DNA from: Podarcis bocagei
Lineage: Eukaryota
Assembly (NCBI GenBank): GCA_964188305.1
Contig: OZ076885.1
Reading direction: 5' to 3' (one strand)
DNA length: 64,000 nucleotides
In this document: positions 3,201 to 51,388 of the stretch, in pieces
How positions within the stretch are numbered: the first letter of the stretch is position 1
How the letters are laid out: each line of letters opens with the position of its first letter
Notes under the pieces: generated by a model
The model's database searches: none
What the model saw: the letters and a program-made list of their open reading frames with translations, nothing else
What the model was told of the DNA's origin: nothing
Made by a program: the position numbers and the translations under genes

Positions 3201-6200
3201 TTGCTTGTTTCCCAGCCACTGTTCAGCCACTGTGAAAACAAGATACTGGACTAGATGAGCCATTGGCCTGATTCTGGGGGTCCTTCTTATGTTCCCATGT
3301 TGCCCTGCATCACACCAACGGTTTCCTTTTCCTTTAATTAGCACAAGTGGCTCAGACAGTTCCCAGTCAGATGGCCCCCCTGCACATTTGCTCAACATGG
3401 ATGAGAAGGTGAGAGTTATTCATTTTTTAGTGAACAAATCTACCTGGAAAAATATAAAAACTTCAATATCCTGGTCCCTTGTAATGGAATGGGGACACTA
3501 ACCTTACTACAGATTGGGTTGCTATTGATGTTAGTGGCTCAGAAAGAGACCATTACAGGAGATGTGCATTCTGTTACTGGAAAGAAAAAATGCACATATT
3601 TCAAAGGATTTAATGAAAAATGGAAAAAATTGATTGATGAGGCTTTTTTATTTTGTTGCTGTATCTGTTTTCTATAGTTTATTTTCCTCATGCTTTTTGT
3701 ACTAATTTATTGTCAATGAAAAGTATGCTAGTGGTATTGTAATCTATGCAAAGATTTTTTTTTCAATACCAAGCTTGTTTTGATACTAGCAATTGAAATT
3801 CTACATTGTATAGTCACACTGGCTGCCTTTAGAAAACACATTTCAGCAAGTTCTTTTAAACATGCCTTAAAAGGCTAGGCATTTCTGCAAGAGAAGGAGG
3901 TGCTTTCCATTTGTCTTTTTCTGTTTAAAGGACACAATTAATATCCTAGTTCTTCAGTGATATAGCAAGGAGTGCTCAGTCTCTAAATATTTTAAAAATC
4001 TACACACACCCCATAGTTGAGTTGATTTTGTCAGTTGTTTTCTGTGAGATGCCTTTGAGACCTGTTTCCACATAGCAGCTGCTAGAGTAAAACATGCATG
4101 AACTGGAAGGAGAATTGCATTTTCTTGCCAATAATGTAGTGTGGTTTTACTGCTGGGAAAATGCAGCCACAGAACTTATATTTTGAATGAAGATATCTGG
4201 ACTGCCTGCAACAAATAAGTAAAGCAGGCACTTCTGTCTTTCGGAAGATGACAATTTGTACAAGTCCTAAGAAAACTATGCTACTGGTTGCTATTGGAGC
4301 CTGGATAGGTAACTTATTAGGACTATGCTGTGAAAAAGAACAAGAATTATACTGTGGGTGGGACTTAAGAACTGAGCAGAAAAATACAACAAACACTGGG
4401 AGATAAGCTGTATTTTGTATGCTTGTTGACTCAGAAGTAAATACAACTGTGTTCAACAGAACGTACTCAAATGTAAGTGTGCACAAGATTACAGCCCAAA
4501 TGCCACAGAGCAATCTCAATAATTTCTAAATTATTATTTATTTGGAATCTAGGAATACTTTGGACGCTGAAAGAAATAGAAATGGACTTTAAGGCCTGGT
4601 TTGCATGTCACACTAAACCATACCATAGCTTAGCATGAACATGCAGGTGTACAAGCTGTTTGAGGGGAAACCATGGCTACTTTGCTGCTCCCTGGTCATT
4701 CTGCTGCTGTGCTAAGCTACGGTTTGGTTTAGCATGCTGTCTGAACACAGGCTCATGCCTTAGCTCTCTCAAACAATCCATAAGACAATCAGTTGCAGCT
4801 TGTGATTAGCAGACCCTCAAAGTGTCCCTATTTTCCAGGGACGTCCCTGATTTAGAGAAACCACCCTGGGTTATGATTTGATCCCGGAATGTCCCACTTT
4901 TCCTTAGGATGTTCCTATTTTCAGTGGAGAAATGTTGGAGGGTATGGAGTTATCTGATCCCCCAGCCGTCTGAAGGCAATCCTGTATAGGGAAGGTTTTT
5001 TAATGTTTAATGCTTACTATGTTTTTATATATGTTGGAAGCAGCCCAGAGAGGCTGGGGTAACCCAGTAAGATGTGTGAGGTATAAATAGTAAAATTATC
5101 ATTATGGAATGGGATGCCCTTATTTTCACTTGACAAATGTTGGAGGGTATGTGTTAGTCTGGAGAGAACTAAACCACAAGCCTGGATTTGGCAAAATGTT
5201 ATGCTAAGCCATGGCTTAGCTCGGGACTGCAGATCAGCACAATGACTAGGGAGAAGCAAAGTTGCTGAAATCTCCTCTTGGAATCTTTATGCTTGTTTAG
5301 TTTAGCATGCAAACAGAACCATTGTTTGACTGCATTTAGGTGGTAATTGGGAACACTTTCACAATTGTGTTGTTGTTACTTTTTTAATCTCTGAAGGATT
5401 TTAATGAGAAGAAGAAAAAGAAGAAAAAGAAACAACTCAGAACAAGGAAGGAAAGGAATGAGTTGCATCAGAAACTTACTCTGAGTCAAACACCAAAACA
5501 TAAGAAAGATATCCTGGTAAGAGGCCAATTAAAACAGACCAGATAAGTGCCTTTGCTGGAGGAGGACAGCCAGCTAGAAATGTTTCTCAATGGAATGCAG
5601 TTCAACTGTTTGGATATTTCACTAGTTTTCTGTCTAGTGAGTGTTGCTTTTTTATTTTTTTATTCCTGTATTGTTGAAGTGGTCTAGGTTATTCTCATGA
5701 CTGACACTTTTATGGGGCTGAATGAGACACTTGCCTCAAGCCTCAGGCCATGGGTGACTGATCAGTACCTTTTCTCCCCCCTCACAGTCCCCCCCCCATC
5801 CCCACAAGTGATTACTCTTACCTCCCCAGTTTTGCTCACATCATCCTCATTTTTTGTTTATTGTCCTACACAGTAAATTGCTGGTGCGCTGCCTCTATAG
5901 TCTTTTAAGTTTGGTGCCACTCCTCCTACTTCCCTGTTACTGGCCATAGCCAGGCCTCCACTGACTGACTGGTCACTTACCACGTTACTGTCCTGCAGCA
6001 AGCCTGGTCAGTGCTGCTATCTCTTGAGAAATTTAGGTGGGTCACTCGTTGTCTTATGGAAAGGTCTGGCTTTCTTGGGCTGCCAGGTGGCAACAGGGGT
6101 TGCCAGTGCTTGCTGGGTTGGTACTGTCTACTGACACAACTTAGTAGAGCTGCATTGTTAGAAAGACAAGCAGAAGCTTCTCATCTTTCTCAGTCCATCA

Positions 6201-41700: not shown

Positions 41701-44700
41701 AGAATTTCCTGCACCAATGCTCCATCTCCCAATCCCATCTTCCCCACTATGACTCTTTGTATGTGGCTGTACTCTCCCTTGGGTAAACATGTGCATCATC
41801 CCCCTTTAAAAATAATGGGGCAGACATGTTGCTGCTCCAGCAACAGTGCACAACACCGCTACACTATGAGAGCATAAGTACAAGTTATCAAGCTATAGCA
41901 CTAAATTGAGATTAAGGCTAACATGCAACATTATTGCTAATTGCTTCACTTTCTGCCAGACTGGGCAGGGGATTATGGCTTTGCCTGCCTCTACCTTCTC
42001 TGTTCCCACTGGTAGTGCTTTCTTCGTCCTCACAATTCAAGCCCTTTGCTGATGCTACTCACAGAACCAAGACAAACATCCCTCTCTTGGATGTCCCATC
42101 ACAGCAGTACCTCTCTCTGGAGCCGTGCAATGACCACCTGGAAGCTGGGCCAGGAATCTACCAGTATCTCCTGATGGAAAGCGTTGCCGTGACACACGTT
42201 CAGCACAGCCCCATGGACCTGGTGGGACAAGAGGGAGGAGGCACGGCAGGGTCAGCTATCTTGACGTAACAGAAACAGCAGCATTAAAAGAATTCAGAGT
42301 TTGTAGGGCAGCAGTTGAAGAAGGAGCAAAAAGGGTTTTCTGGTGTGTGTGTGTTTCTTGTGGCTGATTAGCTCTTTTCCCTGTGTAAAGGTCAGAGGGG
42401 GCAGGGTTTCTGTTGAGGCAGGGGATTAGCTGTGGGAGGAGCTTATCAGAGTTTGTAGGGCAGCAGTTGAAGAAGGAGCAAAAAGGGTTTTCTGGTGTGT
42501 GTGTGTTTCTTGTGGCTGATTAGCTCTTTTCCCTGTGTAAAGGTCAGAGGGGGCAGGGTTTCTGTTGAGGCAGGGGATTAGCTGTGGGAGGAGCTTATCA
42601 GAGTTTGTAGGGCAGCAGTTGAAGAAGGAGCAAAAAGGGTTTTCTTGTGTGTGTGTGTTTCTTGTGGCTGATTAGCTGTTTTCTCTGTGTAAAGGTCAGA
42701 GGGGGCAGGGTTTCTGTTGAGGCAGGGGATTAGCTGTGGGAGGAGCTTATCAGAGTTTGTAGGGCAGCAGTTGAAGAAGGAGCAAAAAGGGTTTTCTGGT
42801 GTGTGTGTGTTTCTTGTGGCTGATTAGCTCTTTTCCCTGTGTAAAGGTCAGAGGGGGCAGGGTTTCTGTTGAGGCAGGGGATTAGCTGTGGGAGGAGCTT
42901 ATCAGAGTTTGTAGGGCAGCAGTTGAAGAAGGAGCAAAAAGGGTTTTCTTGTGTGTGTGTGTTTCTTGTGGCTGATTAGCTCTTTTCCCTGTGTAAAGGT
43001 CAGAGGGGGCAGGGTTTCTGTTGAGGCAGGGGATTAGCTGTGGGAGGAGCTTATCAGAGTTTGTAGGGCAGCAGTTGAAGAAGGAGCAAAAAGGGTTTTC
43101 TGGTGTGTGTGTGTTTCTTGTGGCTGATTAGCTCTTTTCCCTGTGTAAAGGTCAGAGGGGGCAGGGTTTCTGTTGAGGCAGGGGATTAGCTGTGGGAGGA
43201 GCTTATCAGAGTTTGTAGGGCAGCAGTTGAAGAAGGAGCAAAAAGGGTTTTCTTGTGTGTGTGTGTTTCTTGTGGCTGATTAGCTCTTTTCCCTGTGTAA
43301 AGGTCAGAGGGGGCAGGGTTTCTGTTGAGGCAGGGGATTAGCTGTGGGAGGAGCTTATCAGAGTTTGTAGGGCAGCAGTTGAAGAAGGAGCAAAAAGGGT
43401 TTTCTGGTGTGTGTGTGTTTCTTGTGGCTGATTAGCTCTTTTCCCTGTGTAAAGGTCAGAGGGGGCAGGGTTTCTGTTGAGGCAGGGGATTAGCTGTGGG
43501 AGGAGCTTATCAGAGTTTGTAGGGCAGCAGTTGAAGAAGGAGCAAAAAGGGTTTTCTGGTGTGTGTGTGTTTCTTGTGGCTGATTAGCTCTTTTCCCTGT
43601 GTAAAGGTCAGAGGGGGCAGGGTTTCTGTTGAGGCAGGGGATTAGCTGTGGGAGGAGCTTATCAGAGTTTGTAGGGCAGCAGTTGAAGAAGGAGCAAAAA
43701 GGGTTTTCTGGTGTGTGTGTGTTTCTTGTGGCTGATTAGCTCTTTTCCCTGTGTAAAGGTCAGAGGGGGCAGGGTTTCTGTTGAGGCAGGGGATTAGCTG
43801 TGGGAGGAGCTTATCAGAGTTTGTAGGGCAGCAGTTGAAGAAGGAGCAAAAAGGGTTTTCTGGTGTGTGTGTGTTTCTTGTGGCTGATTAGCTCTTTTCC
43901 CTGTGTAAAGGTCAGAGGGGGCAGGGTTTCTGTTGAGGCAGGGGATTAGCTGTGGGAGGAGCTTATCAGAGTTTGTAGGGCAGCAGTTGAAGAAGGAGCA
44001 AAAAGGGTTTTCGGGTGTGTGTGTGTTTCTTGTGGCTGATTAGCTCTTTTCCCTGTGTAAAGGTCAGAGGGGGCAGGGTTTCTGTTGAGGCAGGGGATTA
44101 GCTGTGGGAGGAGCTTATCAGAGTTTGTAGGGCAGCAGTTGAAGAAGGAGCAAAAAGGGTTTTCTGGTGTGTGTGTGTTTCTTGTGGCTGATTAGCTCTT
44201 TTCCCTGTGTAAAGGTCAGAGGGGGCAGGGTTTCTGTTGAGGCAGGGGATTAGCTGTGGGAGGAGCTTATCAGAGTTTGTAGGGCAGCAGTTGAAGAAGG
44301 AGCAAAAAGGGTTTTCTGGTGTGTGTGTGTTTCTTGTGGCTGATTAGCTCTTTTCCCTGTGTAAAGGTCAGAGGGGGCAGGGTTTCTGTTGAGGCAGGGG
44401 ATTAGCTGTGGGAGGAGCTTATCAGAGTTTGTAGGGCAGCAGTTGAAGAAGGAGCAAAAAGGGTTTTCTGGTGTGTGTGTGTTTCTTGTGGCTGATTAGC
44501 TCTTTTCCCTGTGTAAAGGTCAGAGGGGGCAGGGTTTCTGTTGAGGCAGGGGATTAGCTGTGGGAGGAGCTTATCAGAGTTTGTAGGGCAGCAGTTGAAG
44601 AAGGAGCAAAAAGGGTTTTCTGGTGTGTGTGTGTTTCTTGTGGCTGATTAGCTCTTTTCCCTGTGTAAAGGTCAGAGGGGGCAGGGTTTCTGTTGAGGCA

Positions 44701-47700
44701 GGGGATTAGCTGTGGGAGGAGCTTATCAGAGTTTGTAGGGCAGCAGTTGAAGAAGGAGCAAAAAGGGTTTTCTGGTGTGTGTGTGTTTCTTGTGGCTGAT
44801 TAGCTCTTTTCCCTGTGTAAAGGTCAGAGGGGGCAGGGTTTCTGTTGAGGCAGGGGATTAGCTGTGGGAGGAGCTTATCAGAGTTTGTAGGGCAGCAGTT
44901 GAAGAAGGAGCAAAAAGGGTTTTCTGGTGTGTGTGTGTTTCTTGTGGCTGATTAGCTCTTTTCCCTGTGTAAAGGTCAGAGGGGGCAGGGTTTCTGTTGA
45001 GGCAGGGGATTAGCTGTGGGAGGAGCTTATCAGAGTTTGTAGGGCAGCAGTTGAAGAAGGAGCAAAAAGGGTTTTCTGGTGTGTGTGTGTTTCTTGTGGC
45101 TGATTAGCTCTTTTCCCTGTGTAAAGGTCAGAGGGGGCAGGGTTTCTGTTGAGGCAGGGGATTAGCTGTGGGAGGAGCTTATCAGAGTTTGTAGGGCAGC
45201 AGTTGAAGAAGGAGCAAAAAGGGTTTTCTGGTGTGTGTGTGTTTCTTGTGGCTGATTAGCTCTTTTCCCTGTGTAAAGGTCAGAGGGGGCAGGGTTTCTG
45301 TTGAGGCAGGGGATTAGCTGTGGGAGGAGCTTATCAGAGTTTGTAGGGCAGCAGTTGAAGAAGGAGCAAAAAGGGTTTTCGGGTGTGTGTGTGTTTCTTG
45401 TGGCTGATTAGCTCTTTTCCCTGTGTAAAGGTCAGAGGGGGCAGGGTTTCTGTTGAGGCAGGGGATTAGCTGTGGGAGGAGCTTATCAGAGTTTGTAGGG
45501 CAGCAGTTGAAGAAGGAGCAAAAAGGGTTTTCTGGTGTGTGTGTGTTTCTTGTGGCTGATTAGCTCTTTTCCCTGTGTAAAGGTCAGAGGGGGCAGGGTT
45601 TCTGTTGAGGCAGGGGATTAGCTGTGGGAGGAGCTTATCAGAGTTTGTAGGGCAGCAGTTGAAGAAGGAGCAAAAAGGGTTTTCTGGTGTGTGTGTGTTT
45701 CTTGTGGCTGATTAGCTCTTTTCCCTGTGTAAAGGTCAGAGGGGGCAGGGTTTCTGTTGAGGCAGGGGATTAGCTGTGGGAGGAGCTTATCAGAGTTTGT
45801 AGGGCAGCAGTTGAAGAAGGAGCAAAAAGGGTTTTCTGGTGTGTGTGTGTTTCTTGTGGCTGATTAGCTCTTTTCCCTGTGTAAAGGTCAGAGGGGGCAG
45901 GGTTTCTGTTGAGGCAGGGGATTAGCTGTGGGAGGAGCTTATCAGAGTTTGTAGGGCAGCAGTTGAAGAAGGAGCAAAAAGGGTTTTCTGGTGTGTGTGT
46001 GTTTCTTGTGGCTGATTAGCTCTTTTCCCTGTGTAAAGGTCAGAGGGGGCAGGGTTTCTGTTGAGGCAGGGGATTAGCTGTGGGAGGAGCTTATCAGAGT
46101 TTGTAGGGCAGCAGTTGAAGAAGGAGCAAAAAGGGTTTTCTGGTGTGTGTGTGTTTCTTGTGGCTGATTAGCTCTTTTCCCTGTGTAAAGGTCAGAGGGG
46201 GCAGGGTTTCTGTTGAGGCAGGGGATTAGCTGTGGGAGGAGCTTATCAGAGTTTGTAGGGCAGCAGTTGAAGAAGGAGCAAAAAGGGTTTTCTGGTGTGT
46301 GTGTGTTTCTTGTGGCTGATTAGCTCTTTTCCCTGTGTAAAGGTCAGAGGGGGCAGGGTTTCTGTTGAGGCAGGGGATTAGCTGTGGGAGGAGCTTATCA
46401 GAGTTTGTAGGGCAGCAGTTGAAGAAGGAGCAAAAAGGGTTTTCTGGTGTGTGTGTGTTTCTTGTGGCTGATTAGCTCTTTTCCCTGTGTAAAGGTCAGA
46501 GGGGGCAGGGTTTCTGTTGAGGCAGGGGATTAGCTGTGGGAGGAGCTTATCAGAGTTTGTAGGGCAGCAGTTGAAGAAGGAGCAAAAAGGGTTTTCTGGT
46601 GTGTGTGTGTTTCTTGTGGCTGATTAGCTCTTTTCCCTGTGTAAAGGTCAGAGGGGGCAGGGTTTCTGTTGAGGCAGGGGATTAGCTGTGGGAGGAGCTT
46701 ATCAGAGTTTGTAGGGCAGCGGCGCGCGCCTAGCGGCGCGCGCAGTTATATCCATCTTTTAGATTTAGGGGAGCTAGTCTCAAACGTTTGTTGGGGGAGA
46801 CCTAGGTTTTTTTTGTGTGTGTGTGTGTGGGCGAAGTTATTTGTCCTGTCTTCAAGCTTTTTATGATGGAGGACCTCTGTAGCCACCCCCAACAACACGA
46901 TCTCAAGATGGAAGGGGAGGGAACAGCTGCAGTCGCCTGCGATTCCTGCGCAATGTTTGCCATCTTGCCAAAGGTTGCAGGCAGCTTCACCTGCAGCAAT
47001 TGCATGTTGATTGCCCTTTTAAAAGACAAAGTCCAGCAACTGGAGGAACGTGTAGCTACGCTCCAAAGAATTAGAGAGCTGGAGCTCTTCTTGGAAGCAA
47101 CAGAGCACACCGTCCCCACCAAGGAGGAGACAGGGGACTCCCCTGAGAAGGAGGCTAGTTCATCAACACAGGAGCCAGATATATGGAGAAACGTGACTCA
47201 AAGAAGTAGGAGGCCCAGGGTTCACTCTGATTGTTTAGAAATACACAATCGCTTTGAGGTCCTCTCCCCTAGCATGGAAGACGAAGAGCAGACTCCATTT
47301 GAGGATCTCTCCCTCATTACAGTCGATCAGGTATATGAAGACGAGCAGCAAAGTCAGTCCTCAGGGAATGTGCAGGCGACCTTGGAACGGACAGCTCACG
47401 GAAGAACCCCGACCAAACCCAAGAGGAGGCGTGTAGTGGTGATAGGGGATTCCCTACTGAGGGGAACAGAAGCAGTGATCTGTGGGCCTGACAAGATGTC
47501 TCGGGAAGTGTGCTGTCTCCCCGGGGCTAAGATCCAAGATGTAACTGAACGACTGCAAGGAATCATAAAACCCACTGACAAATACCCCTTCCTCTTGGTT
47601 CATGTGGGAACCAATGACACTGCAAGCAATAGCCTCCAGAAGATCAAAAGAGACTACGAGGCTCTCGGCAGGAAATTGAAGCAACTAAATGCACAAATTG

Positions 47701-50700
47701 TCATCTCGTCTGTCCTCCCAGTTGAACGACGTGGCCCAGGGAGAGAGGGGAAAATAGTGGAAGTGAACAGCTGGCTTCGCAAATGGTGTAAACAGGAACG
47801 GTTTGGATTCTTAGATCACGGACTGCAGTTTCTTGAAGATGGACTTCTGGCAAGTGATGGGCTGCACCTCACAACGGTTGGGAGGAATGTTTTTGCCAAA
47901 AATCTCAGAAACCTCATCAGGAGGGCTTTAAACTGACTAATGTGGGGGAGGGAGACAGTGCTCCTGAAGGTAGGAGTCTATCAATTAATGAAGATGATCA
48001 TCCAAATGTCATAGACCAAATGGAGCAAACAGCACACGGACCTAGTGGTGGGAGGAAAAAATCCTTAAATAAGAGACACGGGGGAATGATTAATGGACTT
48101 CAATGTCTGTACACTAATGCGCAAAGCATGGGAAATAAACAAGATGAGCTTGAGCTCTTGGTACAGCAAACTAAATATGACATAATAGGCATCACTGAAA
48201 CCTGGTGGGATAAGTCCCACGATTGGAATGTAATAATGGGGGGATACAATCTATTTCAGAGAAACAGACCAGACAAGAAAGGAGGAGGAGTGGCGTTATA
48301 TGTCAGGGATGTGTATACCTGTGAAGAGATCCAAGATTTAGAACCTCAAAGCCAATGTGAGAGCATTTGGGTCAAAATTAAGGGAGAGAAGAATAACAGA
48401 GACCTCATTGTGGGAGTTTACTATAGATCCCCAAGCCAAACGGAGGACATAGATGATGCCTTCCTGGAACAGATGGCCAAGCATGCAAAAGGAAGGGAGA
48501 TAGTAGTAATGGGGGACTTCAATTACCCGGATATTTGTTGGACGTCAAACTCAGCCAAGAGCATAAGGTCAAACAGATTCCTCACTGGCCTTGCAGACAA
48601 CTTCATTGTCCAGAAAGTGGGAGAAGCAACAAGAGGAACAGCCATTTTAGATCTGGTCCTAACCAATGTTGATGACCTGGTTAGTGGGGTAGAAGTGGAA
48701 GGATCATTAGGCGCGAGTGATCATGCTCTTCTGAAGTTTACTATACAGCGGAAAGGAGCAGCCAAGCATACTAGGACTCAATTTCTTGACTTTAAGAAAG
48801 CCGACTTCATAAAACTTAGGGAAGTGCTGGGTGAGATCCCATGGACAGCAATACTAAAAGGAAAGGGAGTTCATGATGGCTGGGAGTTTGTTAAGAGGGA
48901 GATAGTAAAAGCACAACGTCAGGCAATACCAATGAGACGGAAACATGGAAGGTGCCTAAAGAAGCCAGGGTGGCTATCTAAAGAACTTTTAACTGAATTA
49001 AGATTAAAAAAGGATGTGTACAAAAAATGGAAAAGGGGGAAACCACCAAAGAGGAATTCAAACAAATAGCCAGAACGTGTAGACACAAAGTCAGAAAAGC
49101 TAAAGCACAGAATGAACTCAGGCTTGCTAGAGAGGTTAAAAGCAACAAAAAAGGCTTTTATGGGTATGTTCGTAGCAAAAGGAAGAACAAAGAAACAGTG
49201 GGGTCACTCAGAGGAGAAGATGGTGAAATGCAAACAGGGGACACAGAAAGGGCTGAACTCCTCAATGCCTTCTTTGCCTCAGTCTTCTCCGATAAAGAAA
49301 ACAATGCCCGACCTGAAGAATTTGGAGCAAATGATTCAGCAAAGGAAACACAGCCCAGAATAACTAAGGAGACAGTACAAGAATATTTGGCTAGTTTAGA
49401 TGTATTCAAGTCTCCAGGGCCAGATGAACTGCATCCAAGAGTATTAAAAGAACTGGCAGATGTGATCTCAGAACCACTGGCAGTCATCTTCGAGAAATCC
49501 TGGAGAACAGGCGAAGTCCCGGCAGACTGGAGGAGGGCAAATGTTGTCCCTATTTTCAAAAAGGGGAAAAGAGAGGACCCAAATAATTACCGCCCAGTCA
49601 GTCTGACATCAATAGCAGGGAAGATTCTGGAGCAGATCATTAAGCAAACAGTCTGTGAGCACCTAGAAAGGAATGCTGTGATCACCGATAGTCAGCATGG
49701 ATTTCTGAAAAATAAGTCATGTCAGACTAACCTGATCTCATTTTTTGACAGAATTACAAGCCTGGTAGATGAAGGGAACTCAGTGGATATAGCCTATCTT
49801 GATTTCAGCAAGGCATTTGACAAGGTGCCCCATGATATTCTTGTAAAGAAGCTGGTAAAATGCGGTCTTGACTCTGCTACCACTCAGTGGATTTGTAACT
49901 GGCTGACTGACCGAACCCAAAGGGTGCTCATCAATGGTTCCTCTTCATCCTGGAGAAGAGTGACTAGTGGGGTGCCACAGGGTTCTGTCTTGGGCCCGGT
50001 CTTATTTAACATCTTTATCAACGACTTGGATGATGGACTCAAGGGCATCCTGATCAAATTTGCAGATGACACCAAACTGGGAGGGGTGGCTAACACCCCA
50101 GAGGACAGGATCACACTTCAAAACGACCTTGACAGATTAGAGAACTGGGCAAAAACAAACAAGATGAATTTTAACAGGGAGAAATGTAAAGTATTGCACT
50201 TGGGCAAAAAAAATGAGAGGCACAAATACAAGATGGGTGACACCTGGCTTGAGAGCAGTACATGTGAAAAGGATCTAGGAGTCTTGGTTGACCACAAACT
50301 TGACATGAGCCAACAGTGTGACACGGCAGCTAAAAAAGCCAATGCAATCCTGGGCTGCATCAATAGGAGTATAGCATCTAGATCAAGGGAAGTAATAGTG
50401 CCACTGTATTCTGCTCTGGTCAGACCACACCTGGAGTACTGTGTCCAGTTCTGGGCACCACAATTCAAGAAGGACACTGACAAACTGGAACGTGTCCAGA
50501 GGAGGGCAACCAAAATGGTCAAAGGCCTGGAAACGATGCCTTATGAGGAACGGCTAAGGGAGCTGGGCATGTTTAGCCTGGAGAAGAGGAGGTTAAGGGG
50601 TGATATGATAGCCATGTTCAAATATATAAAAGGATGTCACATAGAGGAGGGAGAAAGGTTGTTTTCTGCTGCTCCAGAGAAGCGGACACGGAGCAATGGA

Positions 50701-51388
50701 TCCAAACTACAAGAAAGAAGATTCCACCTAAACATTAGGAAGAACTTCCTGACAGTAAGAGCTGTTCGACAGTGGAATTTGCTGCCAAGGAGTGTGGTGG
50801 AGTCTCCTACTTTGGAGGTCTTTAAGCAGAGGCTTGACAACCATATGTCAGGAGTGCTCTGATGGTGTTTCCTGCTTGGCAGGGGGTTGGACTCGATGGC
50901 CCTTGTGGTCTCTTCCAACTCTATGATTCTATGATTCTATGATTCTATGTGTTCCTGGTTTCTTTCAAATGTCGCCTGTCAGTTTTGTGGCCAGCCTTGC
51001 TGTTAACCTTGTCAGTGGTCAGTTGATCCATGAAGCCAACAGTGAGTCATGACACTGCCAGCCCAACCTTATCTGCCATTTTCTGGAAAGCCCTTGTGCC
51101 CAGAGTACAGTTCCTTGATCCCCTGGCATTTCCAGCTCTAAAGGATAAGAAATAAACCACTACTCCCTTCCCTCAGATTCTTGGATTGAAGAGGTATCTA
51201 TCACAGACTGGGCTCCTGGTGGTGTTCACATTAAGCTTTGAGTTGGATTCATTGCCCAAGCAGAGGTTCTGCATCTGCCTGGCAAAGAGCAGAGGAGGAT
51301 GCCATCTCACCTTTAGAGATTCGGGGAAGCAGCTCCTCAGCTCTTTCTTCAGCACTCGAAGATCATCCTTGTTGACTAACACCAGCAT
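38770..51388 (-). CDS. Glycine N-acyltransferase-like protein (GLYATL3-like), 284 aa, 5 coding exons
   Basis: Minus-strand exons 51388-51311, 42218-42111, 41093-40967, 40610-40481, 39181-38770; GT-AG, total 855 nt. Protein [58 protein letters not shown]...AVFYKD...[14 protein letters not shown]...[15 protein letters not shown]...FPSSCLLD...[23 protein letters not shown]...PVY carries GLYAT-family/GNAT motifs. Exact orthology uncertain. Confidence 0.92.
39625..39760. mobile_element. Palindromic hAT MITE (same family as 33872)
   Basis: TIRs CAGGCTTCCTCAAACTTGG / CCAAGTTTGAGGAAGCCTG; TSD atttagta/atttagtg (7 of 8 match). Confidence 0.88.
42294..46720 (+). repeat. Tandem array of 152-bp monomers, about 29.1 copies
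   Basis: ttgtagggcagc recurs at 42301, 42453 ... 44581 (15x152) ... 46709 (29x152). Units are near-identical; I saw variants only in units 3, 5, 7, 12 and 21. Confidence 0.98.
46863..47936 (+). CDS. CR1 ORF1p (Zn finger, coiled coil, SGNH/GDSL esterase), 357 aa
   Basis: CDSC...CSNC zinc finger, heptad-like [22 protein letters not shown], and SGNH blocks [17 protein letters not shown] and DGLH. First ATG is at 46863. Confidence 0.92.
   Translation: MMEDLCSHPQQHDLKMEGEGTAAVACDSCAMFAILPKVAGSFTCSNCMLIALLKDKVQQLEERVATLQRIRELELFLEATEHTVPTKEETGDSPEKEASSSTQEPDIWRNVTQRSRRPRVHSDCLEIHNRFEVLSPSMEDEEQTPFEDLSLITVDQVYEDEQQSQSSGNVQATLERTAHGRTPTKPKRRRVVVIGDSLLRGTEAVICGPDKMSREVCCLPGAKIQDVTERLQGIIKPTDKYPFLLVHVGTNDTASNSLQKIKRDYEALGRKLKQLNAQIVISSVLPVERRGPGREGKIVEVNSWLRKWCKQERFGFLDHGLQFLEDGLLASDGLHLTTVGRNVFAKNLRNLIRRALN
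47942..50862 (+). pseudogene. CR1 ORF2 (APE endonuclease + reverse transcriptase) split by one frameshift near 49031-49040
   Basis: EN motifs LYTNAQS, ITETW, GGGV, MGDFN, LDLVL, SDH in 47942-49069; RT motifs [37 protein letters not shown] in 49027-50862. Adding one base in aaaaggggg restores [13 protein letters not shown]. Confidence 0.9.

Follow-up and report, generated by a model that had tools for sequence, protein, structure and literature searches.

Tandem 152-bp units at the 5′ end of a CR1 element in Podarcis bocagei: a candidate counterpart of the L1 monomer promoter

The 64,000-nucleotide (nt) stretch of Podarcis bocagei DNA analyzed here (contig OZ076885.1, called the window below) holds, at 42294-50949, what we read as one insertion of a young lacertid CR1 long interspersed nuclear element (LINE). 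Its 5′ untranslated region (UTR) would consist of a series of tandem monomers and a non-repeated tether, followed by the first open reading frame (ORF1). We put the probability of this reading at roughly 0.6. Among the LINEs of reptiles, birds and many amphibians CR1 is dominant, and to our knowledge its promoter has hardly been characterized. Judged by its layout and by the copies compared, the window element is best read as the CR1 counterpart of the L1 monomer promoter. The two components of this interpretation differ in firmness. That the array is an integral and heritable 5′ part of the lacertid CR1 lineage, arranged as monomers plus tether, is very probable from the alignments. That the units function as promoters is plausible but unproven, and we rate it at slightly better than an even chance.

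The array was delimited with Tandem Repeats Finder (TRF), which reported a single array at 42294-46720 (period 152, 29.1 copies, 99% matches, 0 indels). When the first 19 nt of the unit were used as an anchor, 30 unit starts were located, all exactly 152 nt apart, which gives 29 full units and a 19-nt stub (Table 1). A 43-nt unit probe matched exactly 29 times (0 expected). The units are 99.8% identical, with a total of 7 substitutions across 4.4 kb, and the window sequence contains no N. These values agree with the preliminary description, which had reported about 29 monomers of 152 bp, spanning 4.4 kb and running into the CR1 5′ UTR. It had also described the consensus unit as free of ATG, AATAAA and CpG, and a recount on both strands gave the same result. 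One CpG each has been gained in units 12 and 21 by a T>G change at position 48; these are the only CpGs within the array. The remaining variants are a G>T change at position 49 in units 3, 5 and 7 and two further substitutions in unit 3. The recurring substitutions span 42598-45485 of the window, and their sharing by units 3, 5 and 7 and by units 12 and 21 would fit array growth by duplication of 2-unit and 9-unit blocks.

The array has no sign of coding capacity: no ORF of at least 100 amino acids (aa) starts within it, and three tandem unit copies carry 7 stop codons per reading frame. The leader as a whole (42294-46862, 4569 nt) contains no ATG on the + strand. The + strand of the array is G/T-rich, with a GC skew of about +0.5.

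To define whether the array belongs to the element, six full-length lacertid copies were compared: the window copy, one from P. lilfordi (L002) and four from Zootoca vivipara (L001, L008, L009 and L010). In all six, each at a separate locus, homologous units immediately precede the same tether on its 5′ side. Since insertions that arose independently have the array, it must belong to the RNA template of reverse transcription. Zootoca L001, which was reached via its ORF1 protein, is a CR1 element 91% identical over 4.07 kb and lies in an intron of ATRAID. Its 2.5-kb array of 183- and 305-bp units stops at the same unit position as the window array and is followed by an identical 23-nt CpG block and a homologous tether. 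The insertions examined sit in host-gene introns. A search of ~150 kb of sampled lacertid DNA located units solely where full-length copies have their 5′ ends; truncated CR1 pieces at the same loci had none. The preliminary description had raised the possibilities that other full-length copies might lack the array and that the monomer might occur apart from CR1; neither was borne out by the six copies or by the sampled DNA. The arrangement is that of monomer-type elements, with tandem units at the extreme 5′ end, then a unique tether and ORF1, and with unit number varying among loci. Metagenome scans with the CpG block and with the unit core returned no matches.

The unit of Podarcis (152 bp) is homologous to that of Zootoca (183 bp; score 71-87 versus 18-22 for shuffles, z ~21). 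Conservation is concentrated in a block of ~70 nt across the unit boundary, which is ~80% identical between Podarcis and Zootoca with almost no indels; the remainder of the unit is 15-60% identical and has many indels. The CTTATCA and GGATTA sites named in the preliminary description are present in every Podarcis unit, as it claimed, and have no conserved versions in the homologous Zootoca unit. Since the Zootoca sequence differs, this GATA-like site and GGATTA were rejected as conserved motifs.

Downstream of the tether, the coding regions are of CR1 type. The esterase domain of ORF1 was identified as PF13472 (E = 1.8e-09, above the gathering score), and the best relatives of this ORF are lacertid, turtle and frog CR1 ORF1s. 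ORF2 contains PF03372 (endonuclease) and PF00078 (reverse transcriptase). ORF1 is 96% identical over its full length to P. muralis P0208. The two parts of ORF2 are 96% identical to residues 1-344 and 97% identical to residues 338-947 of the intact 947-aa P. muralis P0084, with which ORF2 is collinear save for one frame break near 49034; most other copies differ there by 1 nt. P. muralis relatives of ORF1 and ORF2 in UniRef are 95-97% identical, and one ORF2 cluster has 196 members. The TCTATGAT tail also ends Zootoca L001. The element therefore shows the features of the CR1 clade, namely a GDSL/SGNH ORF1, an apurinic-type endonuclease and a reverse transcriptase in ORF2, an 8-nt microsatellite without poly(A) at the 3′ end, and 5′ truncation of most copies. 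With ORFs of CR1 type it does not belong to the L1 clade, and judged from sequence it is a functional and architectural analogue of monomer-type L1, not a member of it.

The first ATG of the element (46863) is in frame with ORF1, as had been claimed; the start that is conserved in Zootoca and frog CR1 lies at 46908, inside TCAAGATGGA. At its N terminus, Podarcis ORF1 is extended by 15 codons (MMED..., window 46863-46910), as are P. muralis proteins. The T_TTA_AAC heptamer at the ORF1 stop is a candidate ribosomal frameshift site. No target-site duplication could be recognized at 42294/50949 or around the Zootoca copy. No other CR1 copy was found in the window, where the lone further match is a 52-nt 3′ fragment at ~54.3 kb.

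Table 1. Features of the P. bocagei CR1 element, unit numbers of the six lacertid copies, and locations of the extra Zootoca segment. Positions without a prefix refer to the window.
Feature	Position	Strand	Basis or remark
29 complete 152-bp monomers, head to tail, CR1 5′ UTR	42294..46701	+	TRF; exact spacing; probe matches
30th monomer, first 19 nt only	46702..46720	+	Same array breakpoint in Zootoca L001 and L010
CpG-dense block, 23 nt, 8 CpGs, 9-bp G-C hairpin with 4-nt loop	46721..46743	+	Array/tether junction
Remaining non-repeated tether, ATG-free, (GT)n tract at ~46815-46830	46744..46862	+	Comparison with L001 and L002 tethers
CR1 ORF1, 357 aa, intact, GDSL/SGNH esterase domain	46863..47936	+	Pfam; P. 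muralis relative
TTTAAAC heptamer, phase T_TTA_AAC, just 5′ of ORF1 stop	47927..47933	+	ORF2 in -1 frame
ORF2 part 1, apurinic-type endonuclease, frame lost near 49034	47942..49069	+	Pfam; P0084
ORF2 part 2, reverse transcriptase, different frame	49027..50862	+	Pfam; P0084
3′ UTR ending (TCTATGAT)x3.8, CR1-type 8-nt microsatellite tail at 50920-50949	50863..50949	+	TRF
Array of L002 (P. lilfordi)			~0.75 units
Array of L009 (Zootoca)			~2.6 units
Array of L008 (Zootoca)			~3.3 units
Array of L010 (Zootoca)			~3.8 units
Array of L001 (Zootoca)			~11.6 units
Array of window copy (P. bocagei)			29.1 units
122-nt Zootoca segment	L001:7763-7884		
122-nt Zootoca segment	L008:9621-9741		
122-nt Zootoca segment	L009:9137-9868		Three copies
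122-nt Zootoca segment	L010:9227-9348		

Several properties of the leader are consistent with a promoter made of monomers. The probability that a unit lacks ATG was estimated by shuffling at ~0.02 for each of two unit types, and leaders are free of ATG in five of the six copies, the sixth (from Zootoca) having a single ATG in one variant unit. The window copy and L002 both begin at the unit position TCAGAG, and in Zootoca the ~70-nt block has a GGGCGG box adjoining TCAGAG. Given that new insertions carry the array, transcription should start at its 5′ edge regardless of the flanking DNA. The only element sequence near that start is that of the monomers, the tether lying up to 4.4 kb downstream, and for this reason an RNA polymerase II promoter would most likely be internal to the monomers. 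The best candidate for it is the ~70-nt block, since no other part of the unit is well conserved between Podarcis and Zootoca. With redundant units, loss of the 5′ end of a copy in target-primed reverse transcription could still leave it a working unit, as has been proposed for mouse L1, and an ATG-free leader would let ribosomes reach ORF1 from any starting unit. Unit number would drift by block duplications and deletions, through unequal exchange, replication slippage or template switching by the reverse transcriptase.

A number of observations weigh against this interpretation. The four Zootoca copies begin at -60, -22, +9 and +33 relative to TCAGAG, with no sign there of one fixed start site. 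A TATA box is absent from the units, and CpG from those of Podarcis; mouse L1 monomers and the 5′ UTR of chicken CR1-H differ in this. In bulk unstranded RNA-seq from a related species, the ratio of RNA to DNA depth stayed flat, at ~3-6e-4, along the element between the monomers and the 3′ end, the two read directions were about equal, and there was neither enrichment at the 5′ end nor a pile-up of read starts. Flat, direction-balanced depth fits passive transcription of dispersed copies. The unit and the tether, along with long pieces of the ORFs, occur in probable transcriptome contigs of the related species, by which the start is not located, and initiation inside the units is something that we only infer. 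The figure of 29 units for the window array comes from the assembly. Finally, the frame of ORF2 is broken in the window copy, and the element with a 29-unit array is therefore not necessarily an active one; the window copy is exceptionally long and probably inactive. The L1-monomer-like reading given in the preliminary description is thus upheld for the monomer-tether-ORF1 layout, which recurs at independent loci, and gained nothing from RNA depth.

Unit number was considered separately from unit function. Among the six lacertid copies the mode is ~3 units, and the unusual length noted earlier is real as far as the assembled window goes (29 units, against 0.75-11.6 in the five other copies). 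With its 29 units, the window array lies in the long tail of the unit-number distribution and is no object of a different kind. In mouse L1, promoters mostly consist of 2-3 monomers, with 50 as the known maximum, and unequal crossing-over and second-strand priming have been proposed as routes of expansion (PMC6454616). Depth in a related species was taken from Logan contigs, word depth being a rough measure. DNA depth, 1.58 M at the 3′ end, was down to 34 k where ORF1 begins, a drop that indicates pervasive 5′ truncation, and to 10.7 k in the tether. Bins within the unit gave 11.6-21.9 k, or ~1-2 times the tether depth, with no satellite-scale excess.

These values bear on the strongest rival account, in which a short monomeric 5′ UTR is real and the 29 units are a neutral, minisatellite-like expansion that occurred at this locus after insertion and has no role in promoter strength. 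We regard it as unlikely, though less so than the other alternatives. It draws on the low unit numbers of the five other copies, mostly ~3, on the unit k-mer depth of just ~1-2 times the tether, on the near-identity of the units (99.8%) with variants recurring at 2-unit and 9-unit spacing, as from block duplications, and on the broken ORF2. The same variant pattern would, however, be expected if blocks were duplicated in the donor lineage or during reverse transcription. The ~11.6-unit Zootoca copy indicates that long arrays recur in the family, and mouse L1 has the same long tail (PMC6454616). Note also that neutral expansion touches the extra length alone and is compatible with the units being promoters.

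The tether bears on a second rival. It is 142 nt long in all (46721-46862), holds 9 CpGs, and shares 86-88% identity with the L001 and L002 tethers. Its first 23 nt, the CpG block, are identical at 23 of 23 positions in Zootoca L001 and L010 and are cleanly missing from three of the six copies (L002, L008 and L009); some related-species contigs of likely RNA origin also skip the block (joint 46707>46756). Only the 23-nt hairpin plus tether folded beyond shuffles (z = -2.6). This hairpin may serve in regulation, or it may be a palindrome prone to deletion. CpGs number 0 in the Podarcis consensus unit and 2 in the Zootoca unit, the bulk of CpGs sitting in the 23-nt junction block, and the units are accordingly not of the CpG-rich, methylation-regulated mouse type. 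The earlier idea of a methylation-insensitive promoter is weakened by the conserved 8-CpG junction block and the 2 CpGs per Zootoca unit.

According to this second rival, the units are a transcribed leader with a role other than that of a promoter (RNA stability, packaging, translation control or a silencing decoy), and it is the tether, the CpG hairpin region or host read-through that drives transcription instead. In its favor, the strong depletion of ATG points to selection on the units as an mRNA leader. The perfect conservation of the 23-nt CpG block between genera, the CpG-island 5′ UTR that serves as promoter in chicken CR1-H (bioRxiv 10.64898/2026.03.19.712899) and the location of the examined insertions within host-gene introns also speak for it. 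We nevertheless judge this account improbable. A promoter in the tether could not yield RNA holding the upstream units, yet the units reach new loci; the CpG block is missing from half of the copies; and host read-through would bring flanking sequence along, of which none is common to the loci. Two-unit RNA folds no better than shuffles (z = -0.15) and no Rfam match was obtained across 41800-51100, which also speaks against this rival and led us to set aside the idea that the units are a structured RNA.

Possible homology between unit and tether was examined as well. Apart from the GT tract and the opening 19 nt that both have, it is weak (score 44 versus a shuffle maximum of 40). In L009 (9870-9915) the array meets the tether at a different place, via a stretch that is alike in unit and tether (GGGTGAC / TTTGACC). 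This junction suggests recombination between unit and tether, and suggests that the tether itself is a decayed unit.

An over-expanded or collapsed array in the assembly would make the window unit number an artefact, and near-identical 152-bp units are indeed hard to assemble. We think this quite unlikely, as units 3, 5, 7, 12 and 21 carry position-specific variants and there is no featureless run, 4.4 kb is well inside the span of modern long reads, and an independent assembly of the other genus has a 2.5-kb array in the same element family. That the 152-bp unit is an independent satellite abutting CR1 by chance, or one captured by 5′ transduction, is largely refuted by the identical array-to-tether breakpoint at unrelated loci in two genera, the confinement of the units to CR1 5′ ends, the 19 nt of unit sequence with which the tether opens and the lack of a unit k-mer excess in a related species. 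The sampled DNA and the related-species depth likewise show neither the long element-free arrays nor the high abundance of satellite DNA, and the alternative mentioned in the preliminary description, a satellite being born from a LINE 5′ UTR, found no support in CR1-bound units at ~1-2 times tether depth.

Returning to the reading of the units as CR1 monomers, stacked units were also found in more distant CR1 elements. Immediately upstream of ORF1, a snake CR1 (Erythrolamprus, L003:7522-7900) has 3.0 units of 125 bp and a CR1 from a poison frog (L006:7661-7960) has 2.3 units of 128 bp. A second frog copy (L011, ~5835-5920) has one such unit; the frogs sampled were Dendrobates and Ranitomeya. 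The snake and frog units are homologous (66-69% identity over the whole unit, z = 32) and have the ATTTGCAT octamer in common, and the ORF1 proteins of the two are just 45% identical. The non-coding unit thus looks, from these alignments, more constrained than the ORF1 protein. The lacertid unit has no detectable similarity to the snake/frog unit (z < 1.5). No tandem units were found upstream of ORF1 in single copies from two turtles, one monitor lizard and one hummingbird. It is conceivable, though we hold it only tentatively and at less than even odds, that monomer-tether-ORF1 5′ ends are a widespread and partly ancient property of CR1 and no oddity of mouse L1. If so, retention of the snake/frog unit would imply strong selection on a non-coding promoter module, and lacertids may have swapped the octamer unit for an unrelated CpG-free unit able to expand to 29 copies or more.

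In some Zootoca units, an extra segment of 122 nt raises the length from 183 to 305 bp. The segment begins with GTGAGC, directly after AAG, and ends in a long pyrimidine tract with TTTTCTAG, directly before G; it is on account of this start and end that we call it intron-like. It is present or absent with exact boundaries, occurring in 4 of 11 units in L001 and in all units in L009. The segment may even be a spliceable intron, and the 183-bp Zootoca units may be spliced versions that returned to DNA by way of RNA.

Full-text literature searches turned up no account of tandem 5′ units in CR1; Repbase and most subscription journals lie outside their coverage. The largest survey of CR1 in squamates, a recent one of 111 genomes, did not discuss 5′ UTRs and discarded copies of >6 kb as artefacts (PMC11303007), a filter that would remove exactly the elements with monomer arrays. 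If CR1 does use stacked monomer promoters, the answer of mouse L1 to 5′ truncation would have arisen a second time, independently, in a different LINE clade, and counts of full-length CR1 in squamates would have to be revised. Concrete, testable candidates for the CR1 promoter and its regulation would be at hand in the ~70-nt block and the junction hairpin, and intronic arrays of variable length would be a likely source of structural polymorphism.

Four known systems were used for comparison. The closest in layout is L1 of mouse and rat (L1Md A, Tf, Gf), in which head-to-tail units of 150-200 bp occupy the extreme 5′ end and are followed by a tether and ORF1. In mouse L1, as here, unit number varies around a mode of ~2-3 with rare very long arrays (50 in mouse; PMC6454616), the first unit is often incomplete, and one monomer type gives way to another between lineages, with the ORFs remaining homologous (PMC5381506). 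The lacertid element differs in belonging to the CR1 clade with an esterase ORF1 and in having no sequence similarity to L1; its Podarcis units are CpG-free, whereas mouse monomers are CpG-rich and methylation-controlled, and no YY1-type site was recognized in Podarcis. Chicken CR1-H is of the same clade, and the 5′ UTR of a full-length copy is a site of transcription start in oocytes; that 5′ UTR is, in contrast, described as a demethylated CpG island, and tandem monomers are not mentioned for it (bioRxiv 10.64898/2026.03.19.712899). The CR1 elements of the snake and the dendrobatid frogs share both the clade and the stacked-unit layout directly 5′ of ORF1, but their unit is a different one, with the ATTTGCAT octamer, and their arrays are short. 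Lastly, CR1-derived satellites such as chicken HinfI and centromeric repeats are, like the lacertid array, tandem DNA of CR1 descent (PMC6947457); these chicken satellites form large, detached arrays, whereas the lacertid units are attached to full-length elements and are not over-represented.

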